IMG/VR virus record: IMGVR_UViG_3300021964_000012
Location: 62,001-126,000 of that record
Strand: one strand, 5' to 3'
DNA: 64,000 nt
The notes below the pieces were generated by a model. That model ran no database searches. It was not told the origin of the DNA and saw nothing but the letters and a program-made list of their open reading frames with translations. Of the stretch, positions 13,627 through 40,607 are shown in pieces. The translations under genes and the position numbers were made by a program. Numbering within the stretch: position 1 is the stretch's first letter; each line of letters starts with the position of its first letter.

Positions 13627-13654
13627 AATCAATCCTTTACTAATAAAAATACTC

Positions 13655-23354: not shown

Positions 23355-24290
23355 CTAGGTGCCCCATGCGTTTCCGAAGAGGCTAATGTGTAGTCTGGGT
23401 GTAAACCTCCATCCTCTCTCCATGCAGAGTCTTGCAACTTCTTGGACGTTGAGAACATATTCTTCACTCCTGCCACCCAACGGCATAAGATATACAGGAC
23501 ATTCAATCCCTGCTTGCCTATACTCGTCAACAGCTCGACCAGCTTCATTGATATCAGTTTCATCAGCAACCACAAACTTGAGATACATGTCACTACCGAC
23601 CACAGACTGATAATCACGAGCCACTGCAGGCTTAATAGCAGTCTCCCAAGGTTCTCCTGAAACTGTGAGCTTTGGGGAACAACTCCAAGTAACCTTAAAC
23701 CTCTCTTGAGTGGAGAGATAATCGCCAAAATCTTCATGTAGCATTTGTGTTGTATTAGTTTCAAATGTAACATTTTTCAAGTCCTTCATTTTTGGATGTT
23801 CAAACAATTCAACATACAATCTTTGCCAAGCAAGTAAAGGCTCACCACCTGTCATTATCAAGTGTACGTCTTGCCCATTATCCATTGTCCATTTGCCTTC
23901 TGGCAGTAAACTGATTAAATGTTCAACTACTTCATCAACTGTACGTAGCATGTTGAAGTGTTTAAACTCAGGATAGATACTAGCATATGTATCGCAACCT
24001 GTGTGTATTATTGGCAAGTCGTTGAACTCTTTTGTATTTTTATGTATGCCTGTATCAAGCAAACCTTGTACTTCTTGATTGTGTATTATACCTTGTTTTT
24101 GTTTTTCATCTCGCATGGGTTCTGATCTATCCAAACCAAAGTTCATGCATCTAAAGTTACAACCAAATGTACGTAAGAACACACTAGGTACTCCTACAAA
24201 TTTACCTTCGCCTTGCACACTGTAAAAGGCTTCACTGTATCGTAATTTTGCTTGTTTGTTGGTGGCAACTGTTTGTTCTTCTACTACCAT
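23355..24290 (-). CDS. queE: 7-carboxy-7-deazaguanine synthase (radical SAM)
   Basis: EAFYSVQGEG, FLRTFGCNFRC-(long insert)-CDT, TGGEP, ETN, SPK, RLH. Confidence 0.9.
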   Translation of the reverse strand: MVVEEQTVATNKQAKLRYSEAFYSVQGEGKFVGVPSVFLRTFGCNFRCMNFGLDRSEPMRDEKQKQGIIHNQEVQGLLDTGIHKNTKEFNDLPIIHTGCDTYASIYPEFKHFNMLRTVDEVVEHLISLLPEGKWTMDNGQDVHLIMTGGEPLLAWQRLYVELFEHPKMKDLKNVTFETNTTQMLHEDFGDYLSTQERFKVTWSCSPKLTVSGEPWETAIKPAVARDYQSVVGSDMYLKFVVADETDINEAGRAVDEYRQAGIECPVYLMPLGGRSEEYVLNVQEVARLCMERGWRFTPRLHISLFGNAWGT

Positions 24291-24493
24291 ATTCCTAATG
24301 TCCTTCCGTTACCCATTATTATAGCACAACATGTAACAATATGCAAGACTATCCAAAAGGTTCGCATAGCAAGAGCAAGTCTGACATTTTGTTGTGTAAT
24401 AGGCAAAAACTCAGGCTTGTCATCATCAGTGATGCCAATTGGCATTCCAACTGTTCTTGCCCAGGTCCTAAGCCAACGTCGTTGTCCACTCAT
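24284..24493 (-). CDS. small membrane protein
   Basis: WLRTWARTVG...single C-terminal TM; coupled ORF. Confidence 0.6.
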   Translation of the reverse strand: MSGQRRWLRTWARTVGMPIGITDDDKPEFLPITQQNVRLALAMRTFWIVLHIVTCCAIIMGNGRTLGIW

Positions 24494-24714
24494 TTAGATT
24501 CAGTTACTTTCTGTAGTTGAAGTTCTTTGCCAACTATTTCACGCAGTTTTAATCCGTTACCCATTGGGTCCATGTTTTCATAACGTGTTAAACAATCACG
24601 TGCATTAATATCTTTCCAGATTTCCTTACGTCCATCTGGCCAAGATATTTCGTACCTACGTAAACTTTTGTCCCAGCTCTTAGGCGAGCCGTCTTTCATA
24701 TAGGTAACAGTCAT
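24490..24714 (-). CDS. hypothetical protein
   Basis: 74-aa ORF coupled on both sides. Confidence 0.6.
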   Translation of the reverse strand: MTVTYMKDGSPKSWDKSLRRYEISWPDGRKEIWKDINARDCLTRYENMDPMGNGLKLREIVGKELQLQKVTESK

Positions 24715-25304
24715 TACCGCATAACCTCTTCATTTGGATTCCAACGACTCCACCATTCTTCCCATGGAAAAACAATCCAACTTGGATCATCTACTTTGTT
24801 GATTTCTTCTGCGGCATAGCTAACTTTCAGAACTGCGTCGCTTGCACTGTTATCATATAATACTGCAAAACGTGTTGATTCATTCCATATAGTATTCCAA
24901 ACATAGAGTAAATTATCATCGATCTTTTTATTGATTGTGTTTTCCCAATCTTGTTTGATCCAATTAATAGTTGCACCTGAATCATTTATATCATCTACAA
25001 TTAGGACTTTCTTACGTTGCCCAACGTCCCATCTTGCACCACTGTGTCGACCGTCATTCATGCCAAATGCTATTTCTGCTAATTTCTCATTGCTTTCACA
25101 TGGTACATGTTTGCCATCACGTAATCTTACATCAAGTGTATACATAGTAACATCTAAATATTGACTTAACAAGTTGCTTAGTGTTAGTCCGCCTCTTGTG
25201 ATACCCACGATAAAGTCAGGCTTCCATGAATCTTTCTGCATTTGACGCAATATTTCTTGAGTTTGTCTTTGTACATCATGCCAGGTTACATAGACTTTTT
25301 TCAT
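24714..25304 (-). CDS. type I purine phosphoribosyltransferase (Gpt/Hpt-like)
   Basis: IVGITRGG, VLIVDDINDSGAT (PRPP-binding), WIVFPWE. Confidence 0.88.
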   Translation of the reverse strand: MKKVYVTWHDVQRQTQEILRQMQKDSWKPDFIVGITRGGLTLSNLLSQYLDVTMYTLDVRLRDGKHVPCESNEKLAEIAFGMNDGRHSGARWDVGQRKKVLIVDDINDSGATINWIKQDWENTINKKIDDNLLYVWNTIWNESTRFAVLYDNSASDAVLKVSYAAEEINKVDDPSWIVFPWEEWWSRWNPNEEVMR

Positions 25305-25317
25305 AGTATTAATCCTT

Positions 25318-26151
25318 TCAAGTGCTGACTTTATAGGTGGTTAGGAATCCTTTGGTATCTTGTTCTAATAACTTGTCATTATAATTTGCTTTGCCTTCTT
25401 GTACACTATCAAAGAATCCATTGTCTTGTCCAAGTCTTTTTCTAAGCCAATTCATTTTTAAAGTCCATTGCCATCTAAGATTGACTGTGTCTTTGTGTAG
25501 GAAATCACCTGGTTTGTCTGGATTTCCTTCGTGAGTTAGATCTCTTTCTTTATAGGTATCATCATTGTTATTGCCTGTAAGATCATGTCTATCGTGTAAG
25601 CATCGGCTTTTTAATTGTATTACTGCATCATTAGGGTAAGCCACTTGACTTATCCATGCATCAATATAAGGAAAAGGACTGCAGGTACCAAAGAATACAA
25701 CCCAGTCACGTGGTATGATTGGAAATATTGCATAAGGATGTCCATGATTATCTTGCATTCTTAGTACTGCAAATTGCCCATTATAACTGAGCACTTCTGT
25801 ATCCCATCCTTTACTTTCCATTCTGGCATCATCATTCCATGTAAGTAACCATCGACCTCGAGACTCAGTTGCCAATTGATTATCATATTCATTGAGCCTA
25901 GCATAACCTAATCTAGGCTGAACAAAACACTGAAAATCAACGTCTGCCTCTTCAAAATAAGGAACCATTGTGTTGTTTACATAATCAATCGTTTCTTTAT
26001 CGTCGTCGTCAACTGCTACTAAAAATTCTATACCACTAGGATCATCAGCAGTTTCTATACAACTTTTCATGCTTTCTAAAGCCAGTTCTGGACGGCCACG
26101 AGTTGCCATTTTCACACTGATATTTGTTGAAGGTTCTATATTAAATGGCAT
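25318..26151 (-). CDS. GT-A (GT2-like) glycosyltransferase
   Basis: ATRGRP, VDDDD, WNDD, HDRHDLTGNNND; paralog of 51602..52312. Confidence 0.7.
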   Translation of the reverse strand: MPFNIEPSTNISVKMATRGRPELALESMKSCIETADDPSGIEFLVAVDDDDKETIDYVNNTMVPYFEEADVDFQCFVQPRLGYARLNEYDNQLATESRGRWLLTWNDDARMESKGWDTEVLSYNGQFAVLRMQDNHGHPYAIFPIIPRDWVVFFGTCSPFPYIDAWISQVAYPNDAVIQLKSRCLHDRHDLTGNNNDDTYKERDLTHEGNPDKPGDFLHKDTVNLRWQWTLKMNWLRKRLGQDNGFFDSVQEGKANYNDKLLEQDTKGFLTTYKVST

Positions 26152-26738
26152 TATCTTTTCTCTACTATTTTATCAACCAATCCATAATCTAAGGCTTGTT
26201 CTGCACTCATAAATTTGTCACGATCCATGTCTCGATCAAAATCTTCGTAGGTTTTGCCTTTGGTGTTATGTTTTACATAAAGTTTTGTGAGTGTTTCTTT
26301 GATGTTTTGTATTTCTTTATAACGTATTTCAATGTCACTGGCTTGTCCGCTGGCGCCACCACTTGGTTGATGTATCATGTGTCTTGCATTAGGCAACATC
26401 AAACGTTTTCCTGGTGCACCTGCATTGGCTAAAAAACTACCCATTGAACAGGCCTGTCCCATCACAACAGTGGTTACATCTGGTTTGATGAATTGCATGG
26501 TATCGTATATGCTCATGCCAGCAGTGACTACGCCACCTGGTGAATTAATATAGAACAATATATCTTTGTCAGGATCTTCTGATTCTAAGAATAACATTTG
26601 TGCTACAATTAAATTTGCACTGTAGTCTTCAACCGTTCCATTAAGCATTACAATTCGATCTTTTAACAACCTACTGTAGATATCATATGCACGTTCACCT
26701 TTAGAGGTGGTTTCTACCACCATTGGTACCAAAGCCAT
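26151..26738 (-). CDS. clpP: ATP-dependent Clp protease proteolytic subunit
   Basis: [33 protein letters not shown] triad motifs. Start refined to MALVPMV. Confidence 0.96.
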
Positions 26739-27193
26739 TATGTTGTGATCCTTTTGTATATTGCACTGTTTGCACCATGTTCCATACACTCAACTGAATG
26801 TACCCAACATCTGCCATCTGTTTGTTCTTTAATTAGTTTATCTGCAAAATCATATGCATGTTTGGCAAACATCTCTGCACCAACACCATCAAGTATTGTT
26901 AGTTGTGCTAGTCCTGCATCTTCTAATGTGTGAAAGTAGTGAAGTTTGTCATCATTCTCATCAAGCACAACCTTGTGATCAAATGTATCTTCTAACCACT
27001 GTTTCAATGGCTTCAATCCACCAAAGTCCACTGCCCAGTTTTTATTGTCAAGTTTGCTACAAGCAAATACAAACTTGAATCCTAAACTGTAGCCATGTAA
27101 GAATCTACAATGAGAATGATCTGCATGCGGTTGTCTAAACACTGCACTAAGTCCAATGTTGTGTCCATAAGTTTTTGTACTATAGTATGCCAT
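26738..27193 (-). CDS. queD: 6-carboxytetrahydropterin synthase
   Basis: C-x-x-LHGYS, [21 protein letters not shown]. Confidence 0.9.
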
Positions 27194-27201
27194 ACGTTCT
27201 C

Positions 27202-27504
27202 CTATTCAGCATCTTCATCTAACCATGGTTGGTACCATGCTTCCCAATCCATGTTAAAACTTTCGTCTTGTTCAGCATAGTGTTTTGCTTCTTCTAACAG
27301 TCCTGGGTATTGTTCTAGCATTTCACGGAAGTAGCCTGCTTGTTCTTCACTTGCTTCTTCTTTTACTTCTTCTGCACGATCCCAATCATCTTCATTGTCG
27401 CTTTCCATTAATCTATCTGATTCTTCCCAGGTATCCCATGCTTGATGATGTGCTTCTTCATTTAGATCATGAATTATATCATGTACTTCTTCTTTGGTTC
27501 TCAT
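27202..27504 (-). CDS. small, very acidic helical protein
   Basis: Start refined to MRTKEEV; Asp/Glu-dominated with several Trp. Confidence 0.65.
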   Translation of the reverse strand: MRTKEEVHDIIHDLNEEAHHQAWDTWEESDRLMESDNEDDWDRAEEVKEEASEEQAGYFREMLEQYPGLLEEAKHYAEQDESFNMDWEAWYQPWLDEDAE

Positions 27505-27505
27505 A

Positions 27506-28273
27506 TTAGTAGTCCCATACTCGTGCATAATAGCCTTTGCCTGTGGTGTCACCACCTACGTTATCAACTGGTTCACCTTTGTATTCAACTTCTGTTATTA
27601 TGGTATCACCATTTGGTTGTGCTTCCACATAAATTTTCAACTTTGTTGGGTCAAATTTTGAACCATCATCAACATGCACAACACCGTCAAAGAACGATCC
27701 TTTTTCTGCACTCATACCATAAAACACATATGGACCAGGAACGGTACCGTCATCTAGTGGCAATGGTTCACCTTCATTGTCGCCTTCTTCTACAAATCCA
27801 TTTGGGTATAGTGCTTTGTCAAGATCAAATTCACCATCTTCTTTTTCTATATTGTTGTCAGTAATATACTTTGGAGTGTCTTCATTGTCAACTATATCGG
27901 CAATATGTTTTGAGCTATAGTCTTCTCCGTCTCGTTCTTCAATGTTTATCCAACTGTTGTCTATATCAACTCCATAGTTGTGTTCTAATTCACCAGGTGC
28001 TTCATACCATTCACTGTAGAAATCTTCTCCAGCATTGTATAGAAAGTTTGCTTCAGTCGGTAAGTCTGGATTAGTATCTGTAACATAGTCTTCTGGTGAA
28101 CCCATGTAGCTTTCTAATTCACTGTCACCCTGTTCATTCCAATATTCGAATGCTTCTTGACTGATACGTGCATAGACTGTTTCACCACCATAGCCACCAA
28201 TGCTTATGTGATAGTATCTGTCTGGACGTTTAATTGCTTCAATTAGTTCTTCATCAGTTGCCATAGTTGCCAC
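27506..28273 (-). CDS. acidic hypothetical protein
   Basis: IGGYGGE...SAEKGSFF...FDPTKL...GDTTGKG; highly acidic. Confidence 0.7.
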   Translation of the reverse strand: MATMATDEELIEAIKRPDRYYHISIGGYGGETVYARISQEAFEYWNEQGDSELESYMGSPEDYVTDTNPDLPTEANFLYNAGEDFYSEWYEAPGELEHNYGVDIDNSWINIEERDGEDYSSKHIADIVDNEDTPKYITDNNIEKEDGEFDLDKALYPNGFVEEGDNEGEPLPLDDGTVPGPYVFYGMSAEKGSFFDGVVHVDDGSKFDPTKLKIYVEAQPNGDTIITEVEYKGEPVDNVGGDTTGKGYYARVWDY

Positions 28274-28637
28274 TCCCTGGTATTACGTTGCGAACTCCGC
28301 CTGTGGGGTCTTTTGTATCGCCATCACGTCTAAAAATTAAATGCACATGAGGATACATCACAGTTTGACCTGCACTGGTACCTACGTTGATACCAACGTT
28401 AAAGCCTGTAATTTCGTTGTCTTTGCCTTCAACGTTTGCATTACCCATTTGCATTGCATAATTGAAACAACGAAGCAAGTTCTGCATGTTCGACTCACGA
28501 GGCACAACCAGTGTGTGCCCTGGCGTAACCGGAAAGCCATCATTGTAGACAACAAATTCTTTTGTTTCTAGTTGCACATCGGTCCAAGGGGCTCTACCCT
28601 CTTGCTTTGCCACTTCTAACGTATCTAAACTATGCAT
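28254..28637 (-). CDS. HIT-family nucleotide hydrolase
   Basis: DGFPVTPGHTLVVP, N-x-G-x-x-AGQTV-x-YPHVH, RRDGD. Confidence 0.9.
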   Translation of the reverse strand: MHSLDTLEVAKQEGRAPWTDVQLETKEFVVYNDGFPVTPGHTLVVPRESNMQNLLRCFNYAMQMGNANVEGKDNEITGFNVGINVGTSAGQTVMYPHVHLIFRRDGDTKDPTGGVRNVIPGSGNYGN

Positions 28638-28662
28638 CGCTTGCCTCGTTGTTAATACTGTT

Positions 28663-28690
28663 ATTATAGCAGTTTATGAGCAAATGTCAA
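28663..28690 (-). promoter_or_regulatory. sigma70-type promoter
   Basis: TTGACA-16 nt-TATAAT with TG. Confidence 0.7.
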
Positions 28691-29547
28691 CCATAACTTT
28701 GACTTAATCGCCACATTAGATATTCTTTTGATTCAATTGGGTCGTAATGGTTTGGTTCTTTTAGTAGATTTTCAACTATTGTGCCTGGTTCAGGATCCAC
28801 AAAGTGTGGCATACTGTATCTTGGTAAATGACAGTAACTGTTTTCTACTCTATGACGTGTGCTTTTGAAGTAGTCGTTTGTCCAACGTTGTAGTAGGTCG
28901 CCAATGTTAACAACAACTCCATTCCAAACATATGGCACGGCATGCCATTTGCCATCTAAATCTTCAACTTCTAGTCCTGGCACACTGTCAAGTTGCCATA
29001 AGAGTGTAATAGTGCCATAGTCTGAATGTTCGCCAATACGTAGCATTCTATCTTCAGTTGGTTTCATTGCTGGATAATGTATAACTCTAGTTGTGTTATA
29101 AGGACGTCTATGTGCATCTACCAGTGTAGTGCCCGAATCTAGTATTAGATCAAATTTATGCAGTATGTCCAATGTAAGTCTATCTGCAATGTCAATTGAT
29201 TGCAGTGCAAGTTCTTTAAAATTTTCTATATCAGTAGGCCAAAGTTCATCTGGCATACGAGTGTTGTTGTAGTTGAAACTTTCTTTCATATCTTTAGGAG
29301 CAGTAGGGTCTACATTTTCTGCGCCTACTATGCTATAGCCTAAATTGTTTTCTGCTTGATATTTGTATTTGTTTTTTGTGTCTTGATCTTGATCAAAAAA
29401 ATCTTGCATTAGTTCCCACCAAGATTTCATATCACTTTGATCTTTGTTGTTAAGTGCATGTTGAAAGACTGCAAAGCCTACTGTGGTGTAGGCTTCGCGA
29501 ATCTCTTCCAGTATGTTTTTACTATTGTAATCAATAACTGGAATCAT
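28687..29547 (-). CDS. isopenicillin-N-synthase-like 2OG-Fe(II) dioxygenase
   Basis: IPVID, GF, HYP, GEHSDYGTITLL, NIGDLLQRWTND...STRHRV, RYS. Confidence 0.9.
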   Translation of the reverse strand: MIPVIDYNSKNILEEIREAYTTVGFAVFQHALNNKDQSDMKSWWELMQDFFDQDQDTKNKYKYQAENNLGYSIVGAENVDPTAPKDMKESFNYNNTRMPDELWPTDIENFKELALQSIDIADRLTLDILHKFDLILDSGTTLVDAHRRPYNTTRVIHYPAMKPTEDRMLRIGEHSDYGTITLLWQLDSVPGLEVEDLDGKWHAVPYVWNGVVVNIGDLLQRWTNDYFKSTRHRVENSYCHLPRYSMPHFVDPEPGTIVENLLKEPNHYDPIESKEYLMWRLSQSYG

Positions 29548-29549
29548 TT

Positions 29550-30617
29550 TTAGTTCCCTGGCACTTTAGCATCAATACCTTCAACATAGTACATCATGCT
29601 GTTGAGGTGAGCATCATCAGCAATTTCTCCAGCTTTTAACTGAATCTTTCCTGTGTTGTCTTTGATAGGACCTGTAAATGCAAAGTATTTGCCGGTCTTG
29701 ATACTATCTTTGATCTTTTGTGCAAATGCTTTTACGTCTGCTGGCATGTTTGTGAATGGAGCCATTTGTACTACGTCATCATTCATATGTCCAAAGTAGT
29801 CACCTGATTTCCAGTTACCATCAATTACTGCTTGTACTTTACTAATGTAGTAAGGTGACCAGTTATCGATTGTTGCAGTTAACTGAGCCTTTGGTGCAAA
29901 TTTGTATTGATCACTTGCTTGGCCAAAACCAAGTACACCTGCTTTTTCAGCAGTTTGTAGTGGTGCTGGTGAATCAGTGTGTTGTGCAACCATATCACAA
30001 CCTTCAGCAATCATAACGTCTGCAGCCTGTGCTTCTTTACCTGGATCATACCATGTGTTTACCCATACAATATCAATGTCAATATCTGGATTAACAGTCT
30101 TAGCACCTAGGTAGTAAGTGTTAATTTCACGAATAACTTCAGGTATCGGAAATGCGCCAACATAACAAATTTTATTTGTCTTAGTCATTAATCCAGCAAT
30201 AACACCTTGTACATGTCTTGCTTGATATAATCTTAAACCATAAGTTGCCATGTTTTTACTACGTTTGTAACCAGTAGCATGTTCAAATTTTACATTTGGA
30301 AAATCTTTAGCAACCTTTAGCATAGGCTCCATGTAACCAAAACTTGTTGCAAATATAATATCTGCACCTGATTTTGCCATGGCTCTAATAGCTCTTTCAC
30401 TATCAGGGCCATACTTTACATTTTCCAAATATACTGTTTCCACTTTGTCTCCAAAGTGCTTTTCAACATCTAATCTTCCGATGTCATGTCTGTAGGTCCA
30501 TCCATGGTCACCAATTGGTCCAACATAGATAAAACCTACTTTGATTTTGTCTCCAGCATGTGCAACACTGAAAAACATAACTGACAGTAATACTGCCAAT
30601 AATTTTAGAACGTTCAT
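29550..30617 (-). CDS. BMP-family (purine nucleoside-type) ABC substrate-binding protein
   Basis: Signal peptide; GFIYVGPIGDHGW, TSFGY, EHATGY, TWYDP, QHTDS motifs. Confidence 0.92.
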   Translation of the reverse strand: MNVLKLLAVLLSVMFFSVAHAGDKIKVGFIYVGPIGDHGWTYRHDIGRLDVEKHFGDKVETVYLENVKYGPDSERAIRAMAKSGADIIFATSFGYMEPMLKVAKDFPNVKFEHATGYKRSKNMATYGLRLYQARHVQGVIAGLMTKTNKICYVGAFPIPEVIREINTYYLGAKTVNPDIDIDIVWVNTWYDPGKEAQAADVMIAEGCDMVAQHTDSPAPLQTAEKAGVLGFGQASDQYKFAPKAQLTATIDNWSPYYISKVQAVIDGNWKSGDYFGHMNDDVVQMAPFTNMPADVKAFAQKIKDSIKTGKYFAFTGPIKDNTGKIQLKAGEIADDAHLNSMMYYVEGIDAKVPGN

Positions 30618-30669: not shown

Positions 30670-31356
30670 TTATCGTGGACTATATTCTTGTTGCAACTTG
30701 ATATTGTCCATGAACTCCTTTTTTGTGCCAGAGTCAGTTTTGAATGCACCTTTAAGTACAGTGGTCTGTGTAAGACTACTGTGTGCCATTATGCCTCTGT
30801 TTTCACAACAACCATGTGTTGCTTGTATGTAAACACCAACATCTTCACTGTCAGTTGCTCTCATTATTTCTCTGGCTATGTCCATTGCAAGTTCTTCCTG
30901 CAATGTACCTCTTCTTGCACACCATTGTGCAATTCTTGTGTATTTGCTTAATCCTATTAGATGATCTGCGGCTAGTATACCAATATAAGCAGTTCCAGTA
31001 ACTGGTTGATGATGATGCGAACACATGCTCTTCAATTCGCTACGAACCACCAACATACCATCATATCTATCTTCAAGATGATTGGGAAAACTGGTTGCGT
31101 TTGGCATAGGACTGTATCTGCCTGCCATCAATTCATTGATATACATCTTAGCTAAACGTTTACCTGTGCCATGTGAGTTTGGATCATTTTCTCTGTCAAT
31201 GATCAAACTGTCAAGCACACCATTGAACTTTTCAGTAAGTTCTTCTATCAATGCTTCTTTGTCGCCGTCATGCAGATAACCACTGATGTTGTCACCAGCC
31301 CAATATCTTTTTTTGGCTTTTTTAATTCTTTGTGTAATTATATTGGAAATTGTCAT
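30670..31356 (-). CDS. folE: GTP cyclohydrolase I
   Basis: SMCSHHHQP, GLSK..R, R..LQE, HGCCENRG. Confidence 0.95.
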   Translation of the reverse strand: MTISNIITQRIKKAKKRYWAGDNISGYLHDGDKEALIEELTEKFNGVLDSLIIDRENDPNSHGTGKRLAKMYINELMAGRYSPMPNATSFPNHLEDRYDGMLVVRSELKSMCSHHHQPVTGTAYIGILAADHLIGLSKYTRIAQWCARRGTLQEELAMDIAREIMRATDSEDVGVYIQATHGCCENRGIMAHSSLTQTTVLKGAFKTDSGTKKEFMDNIKLQQEYSPR

Positions 31357-31433: not shown

Positions 31434-32024
31434 TCAATCGATTATTTTTATCTTGGTCAAGTCAGGATAGTTAACCAGTTGAGATTGTTTGGTTTTCAGT
31501 TGATTATTTGCGAGCATGTACATTCCTTTCTCGCAATCTTCAATGCTGGGTTTATAATGATATCCAACACGAAAAGTTTTTTGATCTTGCCAGGGAGCTA
31601 TTGCTAGATCTCGACCATCATAGGCCATTTTTCTCAGTGTCTTCGCATCTCGTTCATTGTTAGTTAGAATAGCGCCACCATGTCCAATTTCAAGTCGTTT
31701 ACTGTGACCAAAACTTAAACATTGAAACTGACCTGCTCTATACATGTCACTGTCTAACCCTCTAGCACTATCCCATACATTTGTTAGTCCGATTCTATAT
31801 TCGTGTGTCCATTCAACTTTGTCATAGCGATAATCTATGTTGAGTTTGTGCATGGTCATTGGAATGCTTATGTAACTTCTGTATGGAAGATTTACTATGC
31901 TGACCTTTTGCATTCGCAAACAAAGTTCCACTGCATGAGTGCAACAGTCAGTAAGTACCACATGTGGTGCACCAGTATAATCACCGAGTGCCTTTTCAAA
32001 TTGTGCGAACTTTTCAAACCCCAC
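31434..32024 (-). CDS. short DegT/DnrJ/EryC1-family PLP aminotransferase
   Basis: FEKAL..Y.G, DCCTHA, WDSA, LSFGHSK (PLP Lys), GHGGAI, GR, GYHY; lacks the usual C-terminal domain. GTG start inferred. Confidence 0.75.
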   Translation of the reverse strand: MGFEKFAQFEKALGDYTGAPHVVLTDCCTHAVELCLRMQKVSIVNLPYRSYISIPMTMHKLNIDYRYDKVEWTHEYRIGLTNVWDSARGLDSDMYRAGQFQCLSFGHSKRLEIGHGGAILTNNERDAKTLRKMAYDGRDLAIAPWQDQKTFRVGYHYKPSIEDCEKGMYMLANNQLKTKQSQLVNYPDLTKIKIID

Positions 32025-32967
32025 AGTTATACCAATTCCATGCATGTTCTACAATGTCATCAACATGATATTCGTTTTGCCACTGGCATGTTTCATAGAA
32101 CTTTTTGTTACTTGCTACTAACGTATCTGGGTCACCTGGTCTGCCTGGACCTTCTACAACCGTACTAGGTTTACTTCCACTTACAGTGCAACACTTACGC
32201 AGTATCTCTAGATTACTTGCACCCATTCCTGTGCTTAAATTGTAAAATCCAGTACTTACTCTTGGTTCTGTGCAATAGAAGTGTGCTTTTGCAATATCAG
32301 ATACATGTACGTAGTCTCTTACACAGGTTCCATCTTCGGTTGCTAGGCCTGTGCCATTGAGTGTGAACTGTTTTTGTTCTTTAATTGCTTCCATTACTCT
32401 TGCGATAATGTGTGTGGCAGATTTTTCTTGTCCGTGTCTTCCTTTAGGATCTGCACCAGCAGCATTGAAATAACGCAATCCTACATAGTCTAGGTTATAT
32501 GCAACACCATATGCTTCAAGCATCTGTTCAACCATCAGTTTGCTTAGTCCATATGGTGATATTGGATTTTTTGGATCTTCTTCTGCTATTGGTGTCATCA
32601 TCGGATTACCATACACTGCGGCACTACTTGAAAAAACTATACGAGGATGCAGTTTCATACCAACAACATAATCTAGCATGCGTTTTGTAGCAACAAAGTT
32701 GTTTTCAAAATATCTGCTAGGATCTTTTATGCTTGGACCAACTAAACTACTACCAGCACAGTGTACTATAACATCTGTGTAGTGTAGTTGTCCGAGAGTT
32801 TGTTTGCTTTCAAAGTCGTCGTGTATGACATAATCCACAAAAGGTCCAAGTCTATCTGGAACAGGATTGCGATCAATAACAGTAACCTCCCATCCTTGTT
32901 CTTTAAAATATATAGCAGTTTGGCCACCAATGTAGCCTCCGCCACCAGTAATTGCTACTTGTTTCAT
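32014..32967 (-). CDS. galE: UDP-glucose 4-epimerase
   Basis: TGGGGYIG, FSSSAAVYG, PYGLSK, LRYFNAAGA, DGTCVRDYVHV, RPGDP. Confidence 0.92.
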   Translation of the reverse strand: MKQVAITGGGGYIGGQTAIYFKEQGWEVTVIDRNPVPDRLGPFVDYVIHDDFESKQTLGQLHYTDVIVHCAGSSLVGPSIKDPSRYFENNFVATKRMLDYVVGMKLHPRIVFSSSAAVYGNPMMTPIAEEDPKNPISPYGLSKLMVEQMLEAYGVAYNLDYVGLRYFNAAGADPKGRHGQEKSATHIIARVMEAIKEQKQFTLNGTGLATEDGTCVRDYVHVSDIAKAHFYCTEPRVSTGFYNLSTGMGASNLEILRKCCTVSGSKPSTVVEGPGRPGDPDTLVASNKKFYETCQWQNEYHVDDIVEHAWNWYNCGV

Positions 32968-33515
32968 GATAGGTTTGCTTTCCATAGTTTGTGTAAATAT
33001 TTTGCTTTGTCTTTGTTGATAGCAGATGTTAAGAAAAAATCAAGCCTATCTAGTACTTCATCTATGTCATCACTGAATAATTCATACACACTGATATTCA
33101 TAATATCTTCCATGTTGCTTCCAAAATAATTGTGCATCATATGCGGTTCATATAAAAATATTTGTTCATGATCAAAATAACCATCTAACTTTAGTTCTCC
33201 ATTACGTTTGTAAAGAATTGATCTGCATTCATATGTATCTGGTGATATGAGTATCCACTTTTTATTGTCTGTTTGGCGTATATCTTCTCTAATACTCATT
33301 ATTTCGCCAAAGTGGCCGTGTACTATATTGTTTTTATGATACTTTTCCTTTGTTAAGTTTGGTTCACCCTCAACTTCATGAACACCAATTTGCTTATTTT
33401 TTTTGTTTCTAGTATAAATTTGTTTATAGTAGTCAAAGTTATCTTCATTGAGATGAAGTATGTTCTTAAGATGGTTACCGCCGCCAAAAGGAACAAAGCA
33501 AATTATTATTTTCAT
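32964..33515 (-). CDS. hypothetical protein, sulfotransferase-like N-terminal loop
   Basis: FVPFGGGNHL resembles 34787..35392 (YIPGSAGNLL); both end with H-x-x-W / W-x-x-W. Confidence 0.45.
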   Translation of the reverse strand: MKIIICFVPFGGGNHLKNILHLNEDNFDYYKQIYTRNKKNKQIGVHEVEGEPNLTKEKYHKNNIVHGHFGEIMSIREDIRQTDNKKWILISPDTYECRSILYKRNGELKLDGYFDHEQIFLYEPHMMHNYFGSNMEDIMNISVYELFSDDIDEVLDRLDFFLTSAINKDKAKYLHKLWKANLS

Positions 33516-33544
33516 GAAAACAGTTCCTATTGTCAAGTGTCTTC

Positions 33545-34732
33545 TTAAATTTTTACAACTTGATACTTTGCACCAGCAACATGATCTCTATACCTGTTAC
33601 CTGTACGTAACCATTGTTCACCTTTGCCCTGCATGATGTCAACCACCCTATCAACAGTACCATCAGTATGATCGCTTATCAAGCCCATGTTGTGATGTGC
33701 TTCTTTTAGTAGGTTTCCTAGTTTAACTTCGACATCATCAATGCTCCAAGGCACATACAATCTGTTTGGATCGTTTGCAAATGTTTCTGGAAAACTTCTG
33801 TATGCTGGATACAGTACATTACAACCTAGTGCATCTGCTTCACTGACAGTGTTGCTTACCCAATCTTGTAAAGCACAGTTAAACAATACTCTACTATCAT
33901 TTAGTATTTTGTAGTATTCATGCTTTTGCAAGTTTTCGTGTATTTCTAGTATGCCACGTGCTTCAAGTTCTCTTGCACGAGTTATATATTTTTCATTGTT
34001 ACTACGCAATGGTCCACCTTGTAGTATTGCAAACGTTTGAGAACCTGGATGTTGTTCGCTATAACGTTCTACTAGATCCATAAAGAAGTCTGGTTGCTTC
34101 TCTTGATCAAATCTTGCACTAAAGCAAATCCTATTAGCACGTTCATGAAAAGGCTTTATCCGTTCGCCCAACCTTTCCTGAACTTCTGCTTTGCCAAATG
34201 CCAAGCCTGAGATATTGTATATAGGTGACTCCCAGCCAGCAATCTTCATGTGTGCTACCATTTCTTCATTGGTAGCCAAGACTGTGGCAAACTCACATAC
34301 CATCTTCTCATATAGGCCCATCCACTTGGACATTCCCCACACATGTACGAAATCATCTGGATCAATTGCTTGGGCAAGACAGCGTACATATACTCGGGGT
34401 CTTTGGGTACTTGGAATCTGATCCATAATATATGGCAGACTCTCTATACCCGGCTGAAACATATCTTCAAAGTAAATAACATCTTCTCCACCGCATTCAC
34501 CATTACGCATCATTTGCACTAGATTCATAATCTGGCTCATACCAAAATAACTGCGTCCATGTGCATCTAATACTTGTCCAACTGATATACTTTTTGAGTC
34601 ATCAATTGTTGTACCTGGAACATACACAACATCAAGTCCTCTACGATCAAACACACGTCGATTCCATTCAGTTAATTGTAATGTATATCGAGCTTCATAA
34701 GATTCAAGACCCATGTAGAATAGTTTACGCAT
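33545..34732 (-). CDS. GT-B (GT4-like) glycosyltransferase
   Basis: RFDQEKQP, LQDWVSNTVSEA..GC..LYP.YRSFPE (E-x7-E-like). Start refined to MRKLFYM with GGAG RBS. Confidence 0.75.
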   Translation of the reverse strand: MRKLFYMGLESYEARYTLQLTEWNRRVFDRRGLDVVYVPGTTIDDSKSISVGQVLDAHGRSYFGMSQIMNLVQMMRNGECGGEDVIYFEDMFQPGIESLPYIMDQIPSTQRPRVYVRCLAQAIDPDDFVHVWGMSKWMGLYEKMVCEFATVLATNEEMVAHMKIAGWESPIYNISGLAFGKAEVQERLGERIKPFHERANRICFSARFDQEKQPDFFMDLVERYSEQHPGSQTFAILQGGPLRSNNEKYITRARELEARGILEIHENLQKHEYYKILNDSRVLFNCALQDWVSNTVSEADALGCNVLYPAYRSFPETFANDPNRLYVPWSIDDVEVKLGNLLKEAHHNMGLISDHTDGTVDRVVDIMQGKGEQWLRTGNRYRDHVAGAKYQVVKI

Positions 34733-34757
34733 TTTTACTCCTTTGAAATATGTACTA

Positions 34758-34786
34758 ATAATAACAACCAATTAAATGGTTGTCAA
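34758..34786 (-). promoter_or_regulatory. sigma70-type promoter
   Basis: TTGACA-17 nt-TATTAT with TG. Confidence 0.65.
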
Positions 34787-36718: not shown

Positions 36719-37162
36719 TTAGTAACTTACGCAACAACCATTTTCTCCATCTTCACTGACTTCAATGGTTACGGCCCTTCCTGGGTATTTATTAGCTATT
36801 TGCAAATACAAATCATCCGCTATCATCTCACAGGACTTGTAGTCCAGCTCAAGCACTCCAGTGTCACCGTGTCCTTCACTTCCGTCCGGTACCATATCAT
36901 ACAATCGTTGTAGCCAACGTTTGAATTGTATAAATTCAATTTCTCTGTCGTCATGGAATACTTCGATTTGCACCCTGAAATGGAAAATATGACGATGAGG
37001 ATAACCAAGAAACGATACATCATCCCAACCTCCTGTTGCTAGTTTTGGATCATCCAATGCCGCTGGATACTTGTGAATACCTTCACGTTTAAAGGTTACC
37101 CAAATCTGCCTGGAGGCTTTGTCTTTTGCATTTTCAACGGCTTCACGTTCTGCTTGTATCAT
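36719..37162 (-). CDS. QueD-like T-fold protein, probable CDG decarboxylase (DpdL-like)
   Basis: EGIHKYP, LGYPHRHIFHF, DREIEF, SCEMIA, VSEDGENG. A second QueD-fold protein lacking the QueD C-x-x-x-HGH/Y motif. Confidence 0.7.
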   Translation of the reverse strand: MIQAEREAVENAKDKASRQIWVTFKREGIHKYPAALDDPKLATGGWDDVSFLGYPHRHIFHFRVQIEVFHDDREIEFIQFKRWLQRLYDMVPDGSEGHGDTGVLELDYKSCEMIADDLYLQIANKYPGRAVTIEVSEDGENGCCVSY

Positions 37163-38469: not shown

Positions 38470-38498
38470 ATTATACAACAACTTGTACTGTATGTCAA
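38470..38498 (-). promoter_or_regulatory. consensus sigma70 promoter
   Basis: TTGACA-17 nt-TATAAT. Confidence 0.75.
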
Positions 38499-39958
38499 TC
38501 AAATAGTGCATTAAACTGACTTGCACTGTTTACTATCTTCTTGCCAGTAAAACCTCTTGTACCTTTAATACTATCCCAAAACTTACTGTTGTCTTCGATA
38601 ATTTGCATGCTTTTGTTATAATCTCGTGCTTCAAATACTCTTTCAACAACATCACGGAACAACACACGTTCAAATGTTTCGTGTACTAGCATTCCAGGAA
38701 GGATACCTTCATCATATCTGACATTAGCATCTTGTACTGCTCTTATGTGTTGCCATACATTGTGTCCCATTAGCAGTGCATAACTGAAACTATCCCAACT
38801 TGTCTTACCTTCTTTACCAATCTTATTTAGGTCGCCGGGTGCATAGTAACAAATATCTCCAATAGTTAGTCTTGAGCTTATCGGTGAATCTTCAAATTTT
38901 TCATGTATACCATCACGTAGCACTACGTCACGAAAACTGTCTGTGCCATGTGCATATTTCTTATCATCAGCAGTGGCTTCCATCATGTAACTCCACTTGC
39001 CTCTATCTTCAGTACGCAGGTTGGTATACACTTGTCCGTTAGCAGTTGCAAGGAATGGCGACGCACAATCAAAACTAATAGTAAAGTTTGCATTCGCATG
39101 ACGACGTACACTACGTTGTATATCAGTTAACAAACATGCCCACTCTAGTTTGCTAGTGCCTAAAAAGTGCATCCAATCATGGTGTCCTTTTTCTAGCAGT
39201 CCTTCATGTATAAGTGTAACCAAACGTTTCAATACCAAGTGTACATCACACATGTTCTGTCCACCCATACCCCAACCATCAAATGGCCTGTCATACTTGT
39301 CTGAACAAAACTTTTTCATAGTATCGTACCATTGATCCGCTTCAGTGTGATTTGAACCTTGTAGCACGTTTAGTATCTTCAGCTCGCCACTTCTACTCTT
39401 CATCCAAAATTCATTGTTAAACAAGGTAGCATCAACTGCATCTTGATAACTTTTTATTCCACATGCTTCACTTGCTTCTTTATCCAAGTAAGTCCATGTA
39501 GGAATATCCATGGTCATACCATGTGTTGCTATGCCCATTTGCCATGCAATAACCTGTTCACGTTTCTTCTCACAGGCTTTATCTTTAGGATCAGCCCATG
39601 CTCCTGGCCACACACCTTTGGCAATTTGGAATCCACCTGAGTCAGCAAGCATGATAGTATCTGCTTCTCTATTACGCACCATATCTTCTTTTGGCACTGT
39701 GATACTTAGATCCATATTGGCATGTCCAGCTGAATACAAACTATACTTGTAAGGAAACAAACTTTCTTTGCTGTTCAGCCAATTCATAGCCTCCATATTA
39801 GGAATGCCCTTGGGCAACCTATTACCAATAATCTTGTTTTTATCACCTGCAGGAAAACGTTCCTTACCAATGTAACCAGCATAAAAACTGCTGATTGCAG
39901 GCAAGAATACTGCATAGTCTTTTTGTTTTAGTGTTAGATTATCTTGTTTAGTTTCCAT
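38495..39958 (-). CDS. TGT-fold guanine transglycosylase (DpdA-like)
   Basis: LADSGGFQ, MDIP, VLQG, GWGMGG, HFLG, ISFDCAS: ordered TGT catalytic motifs; no C-x-C-x-x-C zinc site. Confidence 0.8.
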   Translation of the reverse strand: METKQDNLTLKQKDYAVFLPAISSFYAGYIGKERFPAGDKNKIIGNRLPKGIPNMEAMNWLNSKESLFPYKYSLYSAGHANMDLSITVPKEDMVRNREADTIMLADSGGFQIAKGVWPGAWADPKDKACEKKREQVIAWQMGIATHGMTMDIPTWTYLDKEASEACGIKSYQDAVDATLFNNEFWMKSRSGELKILNVLQGSNHTEADQWYDTMKKFCSDKYDRPFDGWGMGGQNMCDVHLVLKRLVTLIHEGLLEKGHHDWMHFLGTSKLEWACLLTDIQRSVRRHANANFTISFDCASPFLATANGQVYTNLRTEDRGKWSYMMEATADDKKYAHGTDSFRDVVLRDGIHEKFEDSPISSRLTIGDICYYAPGDLNKIGKEGKTSWDSFSYALLMGHNVWQHIRAVQDANVRYDEGILPGMLVHETFERVLFRDVVERVFEARDYNKSMQIIEDNSKFWDSIKGTRGFTGKKIVNSASQFNALFD

Positions 39959-40607
39959 AAAATTCCACACGTTCTATTAGATCAAAATCTTCCTGATAAA
40001 AATATTTAATTTTACTCATTAAAAAACTATCTTGACTAACAAGATCTCTATAATATTTTATCAATTCTAACTTTTTGGTATCTTCAGTGACGTTTTCCTT
40101 TTTTTCATATTTGTTAGGTATAGTAAGTTTTTTGTTAGATGCCCACGAGAAAAAATTTTCTGTAAACTGTTCGTCTAAATAAAACCAAGTTGTAGAAGAT
40201 TCCTCTAATTTTCTTATAAATTTGGATACAAATCTATTTTGTGGTTTGGTATGAATATCCAATCCGTCTGCACCATTTGATCCTATTTTTGCAGGTAAAC
40301 CATTCGAGAGTACTGTTTCCTTAGCATTTATAAAAAATTCTAATACTTGCCTTTCGTTCCGTTCACGGCCTGGAAAAGACGCTAGATATTGTGCAACACC
40401 AGATGCCCAACGTTCTATAGGATCTCGAAGAACACAAACCTTATTAGTATGCGATGATTCTGTGCGTTTTAGTTCTCTTCCTAGGTTTCTCTCTAACCAA
40501 CTGCTGGCATTTTTTGGAATACAAATCACCATGTGTGAATTTTTGACATCAGACATTTCATCATCATAATATTCGTTTATAAAAATATACTCTGGATCAG
40601 CCCTCAT
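39948..40607 (-). CDS. sulfotransferase family 2-like protein
   Basis: IPKNASS, LRDPIERWAS, HTKPQ, NVT, YQEDF. Confidence 0.7.
   Translation of the reverse strand: MRADPEYIFINEYYDDEMSDVKNSHMVICIPKNASSWLERNLGRELKRTESSHTNKVCVLRDPIERWASGVAQYLASFPGRERNERQVLEFFINAKETVLSNGLPAKIGSNGADGLDIHTKPQNRFVSKFIRKLEESSTTWFYLDEQFTENFFSWASNKKLTIPNKYEKKENVTEDTKKLELIKYYRDLVSQDSFLMSKIKYFYQEDFDLIERVEFYGN

Follow-up and report, generated by a model that had tools for sequence, protein, structure and literature searches.

Phage deazaguanine pathways and their PRTase

Complete replacement of G in phage DNA has been reported for Cellulophaga phage phiST, in which all G is dDG, for Flavobacterium phage immuto_2-6A (fdPreQ1), and for the Campylobacter Firehammervirus CP220 (dADG) (Table 1 of Cui et al. 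2023, PMC10516641). According to the same account, the Campylobacter phages stop at CDG, and a QueC homologue, QueC*, is proposed to synthesize ADG. The signature of DpdL, a proposed CDG decarboxylase, also stems from this work, which is silent on the Gpt-like phosphoribosyltransferase (PRTase) that phiST encodes as well (PMC10516641).

Here, we describe an uncultured marine jumbo phage in which a PRTase of this family lies within a cluster of que genes, giving a handle on how fully modified genomes arise. Outside the phage world, the toyocamycin and tubercidin pathways of Streptomyces encode the PRTases ToyH and TubE together with FolE, QueD, and QueE homologues; these enzymes act on preQ0 or CDG to yield secondary-metabolite nucleosides.

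A minus-strand que island in a jumbo phage

The window analyzed here, a stretch of 64,000 nt, is part of a complete 328-kb marine jumbo phage genome. It contains a minus-strand island of ~17 kb (roughly 23.3 to 40.0 kb), the middle of which (24714-30617) had been picked out in an original prediction as a PRTase, a HIT hydrolase, an isopenicillin N synthase-like oxygenase, and a BMP-family binding protein embedded among folE, queD, and queE. All four gene calls hold (minus strand, translation table 11; Table 1), their identities being borne out by Pfam and structure matches. From FolE, the genes of this interval and its flanks run through Bmp, a 2OG oxygenase, HIT, QueD, ClpP, a GT-A glycosyltransferase, and the PRTase to a divergent QueE. 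Upstream of this block are the genes for a DpdL homologue and for a TGT-like protein of 491 aa.

Table 1. Features of the que island, with positions in the window
Feature	Coordinates	Strand	Basis
Divergent QueE (7-carboxy-7-deazaguanine synthase)	23355..24290	-	NCBIfam models, motifs, phmmer
Gpt-like type I purine PRTase, 196 aa	24714..25304	-	PF00156
GT-A fold glycosyltransferase, 277 aa	25318..26151	-	AF2 model, Foldseek
ClpP protease subunit	26151..26789	-	PF00574 1.3e-79; NF001368 2.2e-94
QueD-type T-fold enzyme, CxxLHGY subfamily	26738..27193	-	PF01242 9.6e-14
Two acidic ORFs, 117 and 255 aa	27202..28273	-	No family match
Small HIT-family protein, 127 aa	28254..28637	-	PF01230
2OG-Fe(II) oxygenase, DIOX_N type	28687..29547	-	PF03171 1e-20; PF14226 2.2e-13
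Periplasmic Bmp/PnrA-family substrate-binding protein	29550..30617	-	PF02608
GTP cyclohydrolase I (FolE)	30670..31356	-	PF01227 5.5e-39
Sugar-nucleotide genes beside folE	31434..34771	-	Pfam; conserved in relatives
DpdL homologue, QueD-like T-fold	36719..37162	-	phmmer 1.4e-11 to phiST DpdL
TGT-fold, DpdA-like transglycosylase, 491 aa, unnamed subfamily	38495..39970	-	Motifs and fold

FolE and QueD both match their phiST counterparts (phmmer 3.1e-43 and 3.7e-33, respectively); QueD, the sole PTPS gene of the genome, also matches the QueD of Synechococcus phage BUCT-ZZ01 (2.4e-47) and carries the CxxLHGY motif common to phiST, immuto, BUCT-ZZ01, and MA9V-3. QueE has no Pfam match, and its hits to five QueE models of NCBIfam (1e-8 to 1e-11) all fall below the cut-offs. 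It possesses the motifs QGEG and CX3C...CDT, with a roughly 50-aa insert separating CX3C from CDT, and is homologous to the annotated QueE of BUCT-ZZ01 (phmmer 2e-61). In the DpdL homologue, the motif LGYPHRHIF aligns with DpdL relatives.

The original prediction had presumed a DpdA-type base exchange, and a DpdA-like enzyme is indeed present in the window, recognizable by motifs and fold as opposed to Pfam. This 491-aa protein, which is without a Pfam match and is not picked up by the DpdA3 profile, displays ADSGGFQ, LNVLQG, HFLG, and SFDCASP motifs. The top 50 Foldseek matches of its AF2 model (pLDDT 82.6) are all TGTs (E about 2e-6), and the gene was found in 5/5 related jumbo genomes searched. 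QueC was not found in the genome, which does encode RNR, dNMP kinase, and MazG. The gene content makes it quite possible, if a little short of probable, that the island serves to modify phage DNA with a 7-deazaguanine whose synthesis bypasses QueC.

Comparison with other phages

The system of phiST is alike in FolE, a CxxLHGY QueD, QueE, DpdL (xHRHxF motif), the Gpt-like PRTase, a MazG-like protein, and the lack of QueC, and this common set counts in favor of the deazaguanine reading. Nonetheless, the PRTase lies within the que cluster here, whereas in phiST it is about 17 kb away, beside dNMP kinase and RNR, and the transglycosylase differs as well. The jumbo phage additionally possesses HIT, GT-A and GT-B glycosyltransferases, sugar-nucleotide genes, and the Bmp-oxygenase cassette.

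BUCT-ZZ01 (ON615601), a T4-like cyanophage of 156 kb, has a similar arrangement, namely, QueE-PRTase-x-QueD-FolE followed by a glycosyltransferase, a DSGGLQ-type TGT-like protein, DpdL, and a homologue of the GT-B protein GT1. However, its TGT-like protein has no detectable sequence similarity to the 491-aa protein, and the 18-kb locus examined yielded no homologues of HIT, Bmp, the oxygenase, or ClpP. In CP220, a homologous PRTase sits beside a QueE-like rSAM gene, and in immuto between QueE and FolE; both phages differ from ours in using DpdA3 and lacking HIT, and the immuto pathway continues via preQ0 and preQ1 (QueF, DpdN).

A PRTase family tied to que genes

The PRTase scores 50.6 bits against PF00156 (cut-off 26.3; E 1.8e-13) and, among solved structures, is closest to archaeal purine PRTases (PDB 1VDM, 1.6e-8; 4Z1O, 1.7e-5). 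It belongs to the same fold family as these and E. coli Gpt/XGPRT and likewise has a PRPP loop with a catalytic Asp and a C-terminal W-x-x-F-P-W-E base-stacking motif. The motifs RGG, VDDINDSGAT, and WIVFPWE are kept throughout the phage homologues, and the DDxxD(S/T)G loop keeps its catalytic Asp, as in ordinary 6-oxopurine PRTases. Unlike the cellular enzymes, the phage PRTase carries two clade-specific insertions (about 15 and 25 residues) and falls far under the NCBIfam equivalog cut-offs (42 bits versus 138). Its metagenomic homologues number 5635.

Among cultured phages, a TGT-like gene was present in 5/5 PRTase-bearing lineages checked. Of 66 related viral loci with 4 kb or more of downstream sequence, 61 encode a QueE homologue with the PRTase, so the arrangement goes beyond chance. 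In Vibrio Queuovirinae (MG592577, a 56-kb siphovirus that differs in having QueC), a compact yet full PRTase domain of 116 aa is fused to the FolE N-terminus, directly followed by a DSGAF-type DpdA; this fusion ties the PRTase to the initial step, in which GTP is consumed. Relatives of this lineage insert the modified base post-replicatively (PMC6884629). Judged by gene order and distribution, the link of the PRTase to the deazaguanine module, as originally suggested, is evidently not due to chance, because the family is rare (34/50,697 phage records), lies beside FolE, QueD, or QueE in five other phage lineages (e.g., immuto, CP220, BUCT-ZZ01, and MaInes, but not phiST), and forms a fusion with FolE in a further lineage. 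MA9V-3, which encodes DpdA3, DpdL, FolE, QueE, and QueD, is devoid of the PRTase, fitting an accessory role.

HIT and a host-derived Bmp-oxygenase cassette

HIT matches PF01230 with 40.5 bits (cut-off 21.5; E 4.4e-10) and, structurally, PDB 2EO4 (6e-7) and the Ap4A phosphorylase 3WO5 (1e-6); its histidine triad, YPHVHLI, retains the nucleophile His. The gene is located upstream of that for the PRTase in 27/36 related loci, overlapping it by 11 nt in the relative L122, and is restricted to the jumbo clade. A predicted function in sanitizing the nucleotide pool found no support; phiST, CP220, immuto, and MA9V-3 all lack HIT. The protein may be a partner of the PRTase in nucleotide handling, specific to this clade. 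No relative examined combined PRTase and HIT with a lack of dpd genes.

Bmp, which has a Sec signal peptide, matches PF02608 (187.9 bits, 2.8e-55) and the purine-type periplasmic binding proteins Brucella BMP (PDB 3S99, 2.3e-124) and AtzT (6PI5, 3.3e-105), so that by homology it, too, is a purine-type binding protein, as anticipated. It differs from these in being paired with a 2OG oxygenase, in host and phage alike. The oxygenase (DIOX_N and 2OG-FeII_Oxy domains) finds its best solved match in thymine dioxygenase (5C3P, 1.3e-24), with isopenicillin N synthase weaker (5e-6); a role for it in purine uptake as such is not supported. In SAR116 genomes, the same pair (Bmp 86-87% and oxygenase 67-68% identical to the phage proteins) is arranged with Bmp directly upstream of the oxygenase, followed by a 163-aa Gpt-like PRTase. 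By these identities, the pair is evidently a cassette copied from a SAR116-type host, SAR116 being the likely host of this phage, which appears to have acquired the first two cassette genes and set them beside folE. An auxiliary binding protein carried by phages is also known in PstS. No permease genes adjoin Bmp, which would therefore need a host transporter.

Proposed guanine salvage and competing routes

Our preferred reading, put forward tentatively and with slightly less than balanced confidence, is that guanine is salvaged to GMP and GTP for FolE. FolE, QueD, and QueE would convert GTP to 7-carboxy-7-deazaguanine, the DpdL homologue would probably trim this product, and the TGT-fold enzyme would probably exchange the base in DNA, expelling guanine. 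Free guanine, from base exchange or from import aided by the host-derived periplasmic Bmp, would be joined to PRPP by the PRTase, and the resulting GMP would return as GTP to the pathway at FolE. Such salvage could halve the amount of purine spent on a heavily substituted genome and clear the exchange product, with Bmp and oxygenase as an auxiliary cassette whose host version adjoins a host purine PRTase. What the analysis shows directly are the identities and homologies of the genes, their folds, synteny, and distribution; all substrates, the modification of the DNA, and the direction of flux are inferred from these.

Guanine recycling was one of two options in the original prediction, itself partly supported overall, and gains somewhat more support than the other because of the PRTase-FolE fusion by DpdA, the host cassette by folE, a TGT-like gene in the cultured PRTase lineages checked as well as the jumbo clade, and MA9V-3 with DpdA3 but no PRTase. 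The phiST-like gene set, the absence of QueC, the TGT fold, and the retained catalytic Asp also argue for salvage. Conversely, hosts encode Gpt or Hpt themselves, so that a separate phage enzyme tied closely to queE seems to go beyond what simple salvage requires, and complete replacement, seen in all three PRTase-bearing lineages characterized by experiment, is elsewhere in phages typical of pre-replicative dNTP-pool rewiring.

The other option, incorporation at the nucleotide level, we regard as rather unlikely. Here, the PRTase would join 7-deazaguanine, or CDG before its decarboxylation, to PRPP, for which ToyH and TubE, ribosylating preQ0 and CDG, set a precedent; kinases and the phage RNR would provide a dNTP for the polymerase, MazG and/or HIT would deplete competing G nucleotides, and the TGT-like enzyme would polish residual G or have another target. 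The presence of the PRTase family in all three lineages with experimentally complete replacement, together with its absence from the tblastn matches for partially modified phages, favors this route, as do its adjacency to dNMP kinase and RNR in phiST and MaInes, the PRTase/HIT gene overlap, and the RNR, dNMP kinase, and MazG of the jumbo genome. For Campylobacter phages, a modified-dGTP route has been put forward (PMC6884629). Moreover, cells infected with CP220 were reported to contain ADG nucleoside (cited in PMC10516641), and DpdL plus DpdA3 gave no dDG in E. coli (PMC10516641); the latter two, and the kinase/RNR adjacency, would also speak against salvage. Yet every cultured PRTase lineage checked retains a TGT-like gene, as does the jumbo clade, in whose distant members the encoded protein is better conserved than the PRTase (60-72% versus about 56-59% identity). 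Further arguments against nucleotide-level incorporation are the fusion next to a DSGAF-type DpdA, the PRTase-less MA9V-3, the host purine-uptake cassette, which points to ordinary purines, the retention of an Asp whose counterpart in canonical enzymes contacts N7, and the fact that no dedicated dGTPase was identified.

It seems improbable that one PRTase takes both guanine and 7-deazaguanine, feeding modified nucleotides to replication while recycling guanine freed by the transglycosylase. This would square the universal TGT-like partner with complete replacement, and the two bases are presumably isosteric, but every step of it is conjectural and a 7-deaza-GTP ribonucleotide pool could get into RNA too. 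That PRTase, HIT, Bmp, and oxygenase are generic salvage auxiliaries lying by chance in a nucleotide-metabolism region is more improbable still: the lack of HIT in phiST, CP220, immuto, and MA9V-3, the confinement of Bmp and oxygenase to the nearest subclade, a fecal phage contig with the PRTase and no que genes in the 15 kb at hand, and relatedness as a possible sole cause of jumbo-clade synteny would fit, but not so rare a PRTase family beside que genes in unrelated lineages or its fusion to FolE.

Further genes of the island

The interval also contains genes that the original prediction left out: the GT-A glycosyltransferase, two acidic ORFs, and ClpP. The glycosyltransferase has no Pfam match; its AF2 model (pLDDT 89) resembles TarP, TarS, SpsA, and RmlT in Foldseek (E about 5e-9), and the gene, whose place between PRTase and QueD is conserved, is found in 29/36 related loci. 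Beside folE, the sugar-nucleotide genes comprise a short DegT-like protein, an NDP-sugar 4,6-dehydratase/epimerase, a 190-aa ORF, and GT1, which matches the BUCT-ZZ01 ORF adjoining DpdL (phmmer 6.4e-186). The acidic ORFs gave no match in Pfam, NCBIfam, or PADLOC, and the 255-aa protein was rejected as a QueE candidate, being cysteine-free. ClpP, which is outside the deazaguanine pathway, occurs in 8/36 related loci, all in the nearest subclade.

A phiST-type deazaguanine gene set in a complete jumbo phage

The window spans positions 62001-126000 of an IMG/VR virus record. The record comprises 328,292 bp with direct terminal repeats and represents a complete jumbo phage genome; its GC content is 35-41%, and the minus strand holds nearly all genes. 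We called ORFs with genetic code table 11 and scanned them against Pfam and NCBIfam, which placed the domains and the QueE signature where the original prediction, made from the sequence alone, had located a purine phosphoribosyltransferase (PRTase), a HIT protein, a Bmp-family binding protein and an oxygenase among folE, queD and queE. At the nucleotide level, a search of the phage collection returned ClpP-like segments as its sole matches.

Features of the window and, where prefixed G000, of the whole phage genome; the last column gives phmmer E-values obtained with phiST proteins as queries against the full ORF set of the phage
Feature	Coordinates	Strand	Family	phiST query
TctA tricarboxylate-transporter membrane subunit	12217-13686	-		
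NadE	20341-21093	-		
Radical-SAM gene	21703-22848	-	NF033640, 1.6e-69	
311-aa ORF (QueE)	23355-24290	-	no Pfam match	QueE, 3e-7
Two small ORFs	24284-24714	-		
PRTase	24714-25304	-	PF00156, 1.8e-13	PRTase, 4.1e-14
277-aa ORF	25318-26151	-	no Pfam match	
ClpP, full-length	26151-26789	-	PF00574, 1.3e-79	
PTPS/QueD	26738-27193	-	PF01242, 9.6e-14	QueD, 3.7e-33
Two acidic ORFs	27202-28273	-	no Pfam/NCBIfam match	
255-aa ORF	27506-28273			
HIT protein	28254-28637	-	PF01230	
Promoter-like element	28663-28690	-		
2OG-Fe(II) oxygenase	28687-29547	-	DIOX_N + 2OG-FeII_Oxy	
Bmp/PnrA binding protein, Sec signal peptide	29550-30617	-	PF02608, 2.8e-55	
FolE	30670-31356	-	PF01227, 5.5e-39	FolE, 3.1e-43
Sugar genes of the folE-DpdL gap	31434-34771	-		
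DpdL homologue	36719-37162			DpdL, 1.4e-11
491-aa ORF (TGT-like)	38495-39970	-		
MazG	G000 143017-143424			MazG, 2.4e-4
302-aa ORF	G000 143491-144399			
CGPG_00044 homologue	G000 277187-277810			

FolE, QueD and QueE, which served as one membership test for phage 7-deazaguanine DNA-modification systems, are all encoded. The 311-aa ORF bears the QueE signature, ending GCDTY, and matches the protein annotated as QueE in Synechococcus phage BUCT-ZZ01 at 2e-61; five NCBIfam QueE models recognize it at 1e-8 to 1e-11, every one under its cut-off. Two other QueE candidates were ruled out, namely the larger acidic ORF, of 255 aa, which has no cysteine and no matches, and the radical-SAM gene, an N-terminal-twitch protein not conserved with the module. 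Fifteen radical-SAM ORFs are encoded genome-wide. No PTPS gene other than QueD occurs in the genome; this QueD belongs to the CxxLHGY subfamily common to phiST, immuto, BUCT-ZZ01 and MA9V-3. A genome-wide search for QueC returned nothing but the PP-loop of NadE (E 0.117), in agreement with systems of the phiST type, which follow the 7-carboxy-7-deazaguanine (CDG) branch. That NadE amidates CDG in place of QueC is pure speculation; the protein scores as a true NAD synthase and is found in only part of the clade.

DpdL, a QueD paralogue with the motif LxxxHRHxF, has been proposed as the CDG decarboxylase, and DpdA3, a distant homologue of tRNA-guanine transglycosylase (TGT), as the inserter, although their co-expression in Escherichia coli did not yield the modified base dDG (Cui et al., PMC10516641). 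The DpdL homologue of the window carries LGYPHRHIF, and phiST DpdA3 found nothing among the jumbo-phage ORFs by phmmer up to E 10. DpdL-like T-fold proteins also occur in many jumbo phages without a match in the PRTase search (the PA5oct group, Phosso, BCSR5, Xanthomonas X1). The DpdL-like family is perhaps not specific to deazaguanine.

The system is a variation on a known phage 7-deazaguanine type, a phiST-type gene set in an abundant uncultured jumbo clade. What is new here is the predicted TGT-like subfamily, the PRTase and HIT genes inside the cluster, the glycosyltransferases and a purine-uptake cassette of apparent host origin. Since aquatic metagenomes are very rich in this clade, yielding thousands of homologues both of the PRTase and of the TGT-like protein, deazaguanine modification may be common in the sea.

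PRTase genes accompany que genes across unrelated phage lineages

The PRTase scores 50.6 bits against Pfam Pribosyltran (gathering threshold 26.3). Its PRPP-binding loop, VLIVDDINDSGAT, with an acidic pair followed by xxD(S/T)G, and its aromatic C-terminal base-stacking motif WIVFPWEEW are both invariant in nine phage homologues and in an enzyme of SAR116 bacteria. As an orthologue of xanthine/guanine PRTases it falls short, at 42 bits against a cut-off of 138 for NF006613 and 25.7 against 150 for TIGR01203. We predict a type I purine PRTase of the Gpt/COG2236-like kind.

Within the jumbo clade, sampled as 235 viral contigs with a PRTase relative from which 80 loci were fetched, a QueE homologue stood alongside the PRTase in 61 of the 66 loci whose downstream flank extends for 4 kb or more. 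Upstream, QueD (30/36), the 277-aa ORF (29/36), HIT (27/36) and FolE (24/36) were frequent, and ClpP (8/36), Bmp (3/36) and the oxygenase (3/36) were not. In the 181-kb relative L122 (7454-8387), the PRTase and HIT genes share an 11-nt overlap, and a 68-aa ORF, FolE and QueE come next.

Because synteny among relatives is weak proof by itself, the search was widened beyond the clade. By tblastn, the window PRTase found only Cellulophaga phages phiST, phi13:1 and phi19:2 and Synechococcus phage BUCT-ZZ01 among cultured phages, and the phiST PRTase as query matched just 34 of 50,697 phage records.

Phages among the 34 matches to the phiST PRTase query
Phage or group	Gene order or neighbourhood
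phiST group	
Flavobacterium phage immuto_2-6A	QueD-x-QueE-x-x-PRTase-FolE-...-DpdA
Campylobacter Firehammervirus CP220 and relatives	PRTase, one ORF, then QueE-like radical-SAM gene
Brevundimonas phages MaInes, StAshley	RNR-dNMP kinase-FolE-PRTase; QueE and DpdA3-like 266-aa ORF close by
BUCT-ZZ01	QueE-PRTase-x-QueD-FolE-GT, then TGT-like protein with DSGGLQ, then DpdL
Two fecal contigs	
Five Vibrio phage records (Queuovirinae where examined)	

In Vibrio phage 1.207.B (MG592577; 5800-6723), a protein of 307 aa that carries the annotation GTP cyclohydrolase I proves to be a PRTase domain fused to FolE; the PRTase part is complete, compact and N-terminal (residues 1-116, family profile E 2.3e-11), and a gene for a DSGAF-type DpdA follows directly. 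Since unrelated phage lineages share the que-gene neighbourhood, the association is real: the PRTase family is tied to FolE, QueD, QueE and a TGT-like gene independently of phylogeny. Set beside this distribution, a PRTase with no specific link to the pathway is very improbable. The association does have exceptions. Chryseobacterium phage MA9V-3 encodes DpdA3, DpdL, FolE, QueE and QueD, and even the family profile found no PRTase there.

Complete replacement of G has been reported in exactly the phiST, immuto and CP220 lineages (Table 1, PMC10516641). A phosphoribosyltransferase is nowhere mentioned by Cui et al. (PMC10516641), and the PRTase is absent from both deazaguanine surveys searched, Hutinet 2019 (PMC6884629) and Cui 2023 (PMC10516641). 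Nor did the literature searched yield the cross-lineage association or the PRTase-FolE fusion; some GenBank records of Campylobacter phages label the PRTase gene as related to queuosine biosynthesis.

The hypothetical gene adjoining the phiST PRTase (CGPG_00044, 9431-10039) is a dNMP kinase (PF21448, 3.2e-5), whose jumbo-phage homologue adjoins an Rv2179c-like exonuclease. BUCT-ZZ01 too encodes such an exonuclease near its cassette.

A transglycosylase-like protein outside the DpdA3 subfamily

The 491-aa ORF shows the TGT hallmarks ADSGGFQ, LNVLQG, HFLG and SFDCASPFLATANG. Searches of the protein against Pfam, PADLOC, PDB sequences and PDB profiles were blank, and the DpdA3 profile produced no significant match in the genome, reaching this ORF only weakly (hmmsearch E 0.22). 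By hhalign, the protein aligned with DpdA3 at a probability of 21% (E 1e-3), colinear across 117 columns only. An AlphaFold2 model from 22 homologues (pLDDT 82.6, pTM 0.86) had TGT structures as all of its top 50 Foldseek matches (E ~2e-6, probability 1.00, TM 0.4-0.54). On the strength of the motifs and of this fold match, we assign the phage a predicted DpdA-like enzyme of a subfamily not yet described, which by its sequence lies outside the DpdA3 subfamily of phiST, MA9V-3 and immuto. Each of the five related jumbo genomes that were searched encodes a homologue (60-82% identity), and metagenomes add at least 7,946 members to the family, none of them named; it may constitute a further DpdA subfamily.

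Two other leads were dropped. A blank Pfam TGT search might have been read as absence of DpdA; it carries no information, as an identical search likewise overlooked the DpdA genes that Queuovirinae, BUCT-ZZ01 and MaInes possess. The 302-aa ORF near MazG had the top DpdA3-profile score (E 0.07), but its alignment is not colinear and it has no Pfam match.

A putative purine-uptake pair captured from SAR116 bacteria

The Bmp protein (Pfam, 187.9 bits) starts with an export signal, MNVLKLLAVLLSVMFFSVAHAG, and has PDB matches in a basic membrane lipoprotein of Brucella (3S99, 2.3e-124) and in the Pseudomonas binding protein AtzT (6PI5, 3.3e-105), both of which were reportedly crystallized with purine bases bound. 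The oxygenase contains both of its Pfam domains and, in GEHSDYG, STRHRV and PRYSMP, the HxD...H iron triad and the RxS 2OG site. Originally described as an IPNS-like dioxygenase, it does belong to the DIOX_N/IPNS-like clan of 2OG-Fe(II) oxygenases, but its best solved relative is a fungal thymine dioxygenase (1.3e-24), whereas isopenicillin N synthase reaches only 5e-6.

When one genome per prokaryotic species was scanned, the oxygenase turned up at 67-68% identity in five SAR116 genomes from single cells or metagenomes, and in all five a Bmp gene 86-87% identical to that of the phage lies directly upstream, in the same order. A sixth match, PBLX01000022.1, filed under a Legionellales MAG, carries FolE (79%), DegT (52%), Bmp (76%) and the oxygenase (70%) in the order of the window and is probably a phage contig mis-binned into a bacterial genome. 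Given the same-order pair in SAR116 and its restriction to the nearest relatives of the phage, we conclude that Bmp and oxygenase were taken up recently from the host as a cassette, predicted to serve purine-base acquisition. SAR116 is the likely host.

The next gene in the annotated SAR116 locus encodes a 163-aa PRTase (PF00156, 2.6e-17). This gene was apparently left behind when the pair was inserted just after folE, which suggests that the phage's own PRTase may serve the bases handled by the host cassette. The pair is a clean case of a host purine-uptake function placed beside a GTP-consuming pathway, and its capture would widen the auxiliary-gene concept to purine-base acquisition.

The HIT protein is confined to the jumbo clade

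The small HIT protein (Pfam, 40.5 bits against 21.5) resembles Fhit and Ap4A phosphorylases (PDB 2EO4, 6e-7; 3WO5, 1e-6). Aligned to 2EO4, its counterpart of the HxHxHxx triad, Y-P-H-V-H-L-I, has tyrosine for the first histidine and retains the middle and last, including the nucleophilic one. JGI labels its 1,644 metagenomic homologues as ATP adenylyltransferase or Ap4A hydrolase. In the 49 nt that separate the stop codon of the oxygenase from the start of HIT lies a sigma-70-like promoter element matching at 12 of 12 positions with an extended -10 TG, in a setting where the total of promoter-like elements is not above that of shuffled sequences.

The original prediction proposed co-occurrence of PRTase and HIT with dpd genes as a check. 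The PRTase indeed accompanies que and dpd genes across lineages; HIT, in contrast, is tightly linked to the PRTase inside the wider jumbo clade but absent from phiST, MA9V-3, CP220 and immuto. Its suggested part as a sanitizer of the nucleotide pool is consequently left without cross-lineage support, as is any other role in the pathway.

Guanine salvage or deazaguanine nucleotides?

Phage DNA with 7-deazaguanine for every G resists most restriction enzymes. The route to complete replacement is debated: a nucleotide pool was proposed in 2019 (PMC6884629) and a transglycosylase in 2023 (PMC10516641), the latter with a failed reconstitution. The PRTase is a conserved partner of these systems, and knowing which substrate this one enzyme prefers would tell the two routes apart.

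The reading we lean to, at somewhat less than an even chance, is that the PRTase salvages guanine for FolE. Each inserted deazaguanine would spend one GTP and free one guanine, so that salvage would halve the purine demand and remove the exchange product, with the greatest benefit under complete replacement. The Vibrio fusion, which joins the PRTase to FolE as the enzyme of the GTP-consuming first step and has a DSGAF-type DpdA beside it, speaks for this reading, and DpdA of this type has reportedly been tied to preQ0 insertion into DNA (by Hutinet et al. in 2019). So do the host purine cassette beside folE, the TGT-like gene present in the five cultured PRTase lineages checked as well as the five jumbo genomes, the dispensability of the PRTase in MA9V-3, and a retained catalytic Asp typical of 6-oxopurine enzymes.

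That the PRTase instead turns a deazaguanine into its nucleotide we consider unlikely on balance, though several observations argue for it. The enzyme coincides with complete replacement; in phiST and MaInes its neighbours are RNR and a dNMP kinase (PF21448); and the jumbo genome has RNR, a dNMP kinase and MazG. ToyH and TubE of Streptomyces offer a precedent. A modified dGTP was once proposed for Campylobacter phages (PMC6884629) and ADG nucleoside is cited from infected cells (PMC10516641), and the failure to reconstitute insertion with DpdL and DpdA3 (PMC10516641) points the same way. A dual-specificity PRTase also deserves mention, and we think it decidedly improbable.

In its boldest form, which we rate as doubtful, the nucleotide route makes the PRTase the missing enzyme of complete G replacement, converting 7-deazaguanine or CDG into a nucleotide with which the polymerase writes the genome while the TGT-like protein acts as back-up. 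If true, this would cover phiST, CP220, immuto and the jumbo clade and overturn the 2023 view of all phage insertion as post-replicative; in the jumbo clade, two glycosyltransferases and sugar-nucleotide genes could then mean a sugar-bearing deazaguanine yet to be described.

Glycosyltransferases and other auxiliary genes

The 277-aa ORF between PRTase and QueD adopts a GT-A glycosyltransferase fold in its model (pLDDT 89), with TarP, TarS and SpsA as Foldseek matches at ~5e-9. Between folE and DpdL lie genes for a short DegT-like protein, an NDP-sugar dehydratase/epimerase and a GT-B protein, the last matching a BUCT-ZZ01 ORF adjoining DpdL at 6.4e-186, and these sugar genes are kept in distant relatives. 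Judging by these genes, the final product may be more elaborate than dDG, for instance sugar-bearing.

TctA, NadE and ClpP are further auxiliary genes of the window, and a DctP binding protein is encoded by one relative; among such genes, transporter components seem to recur.
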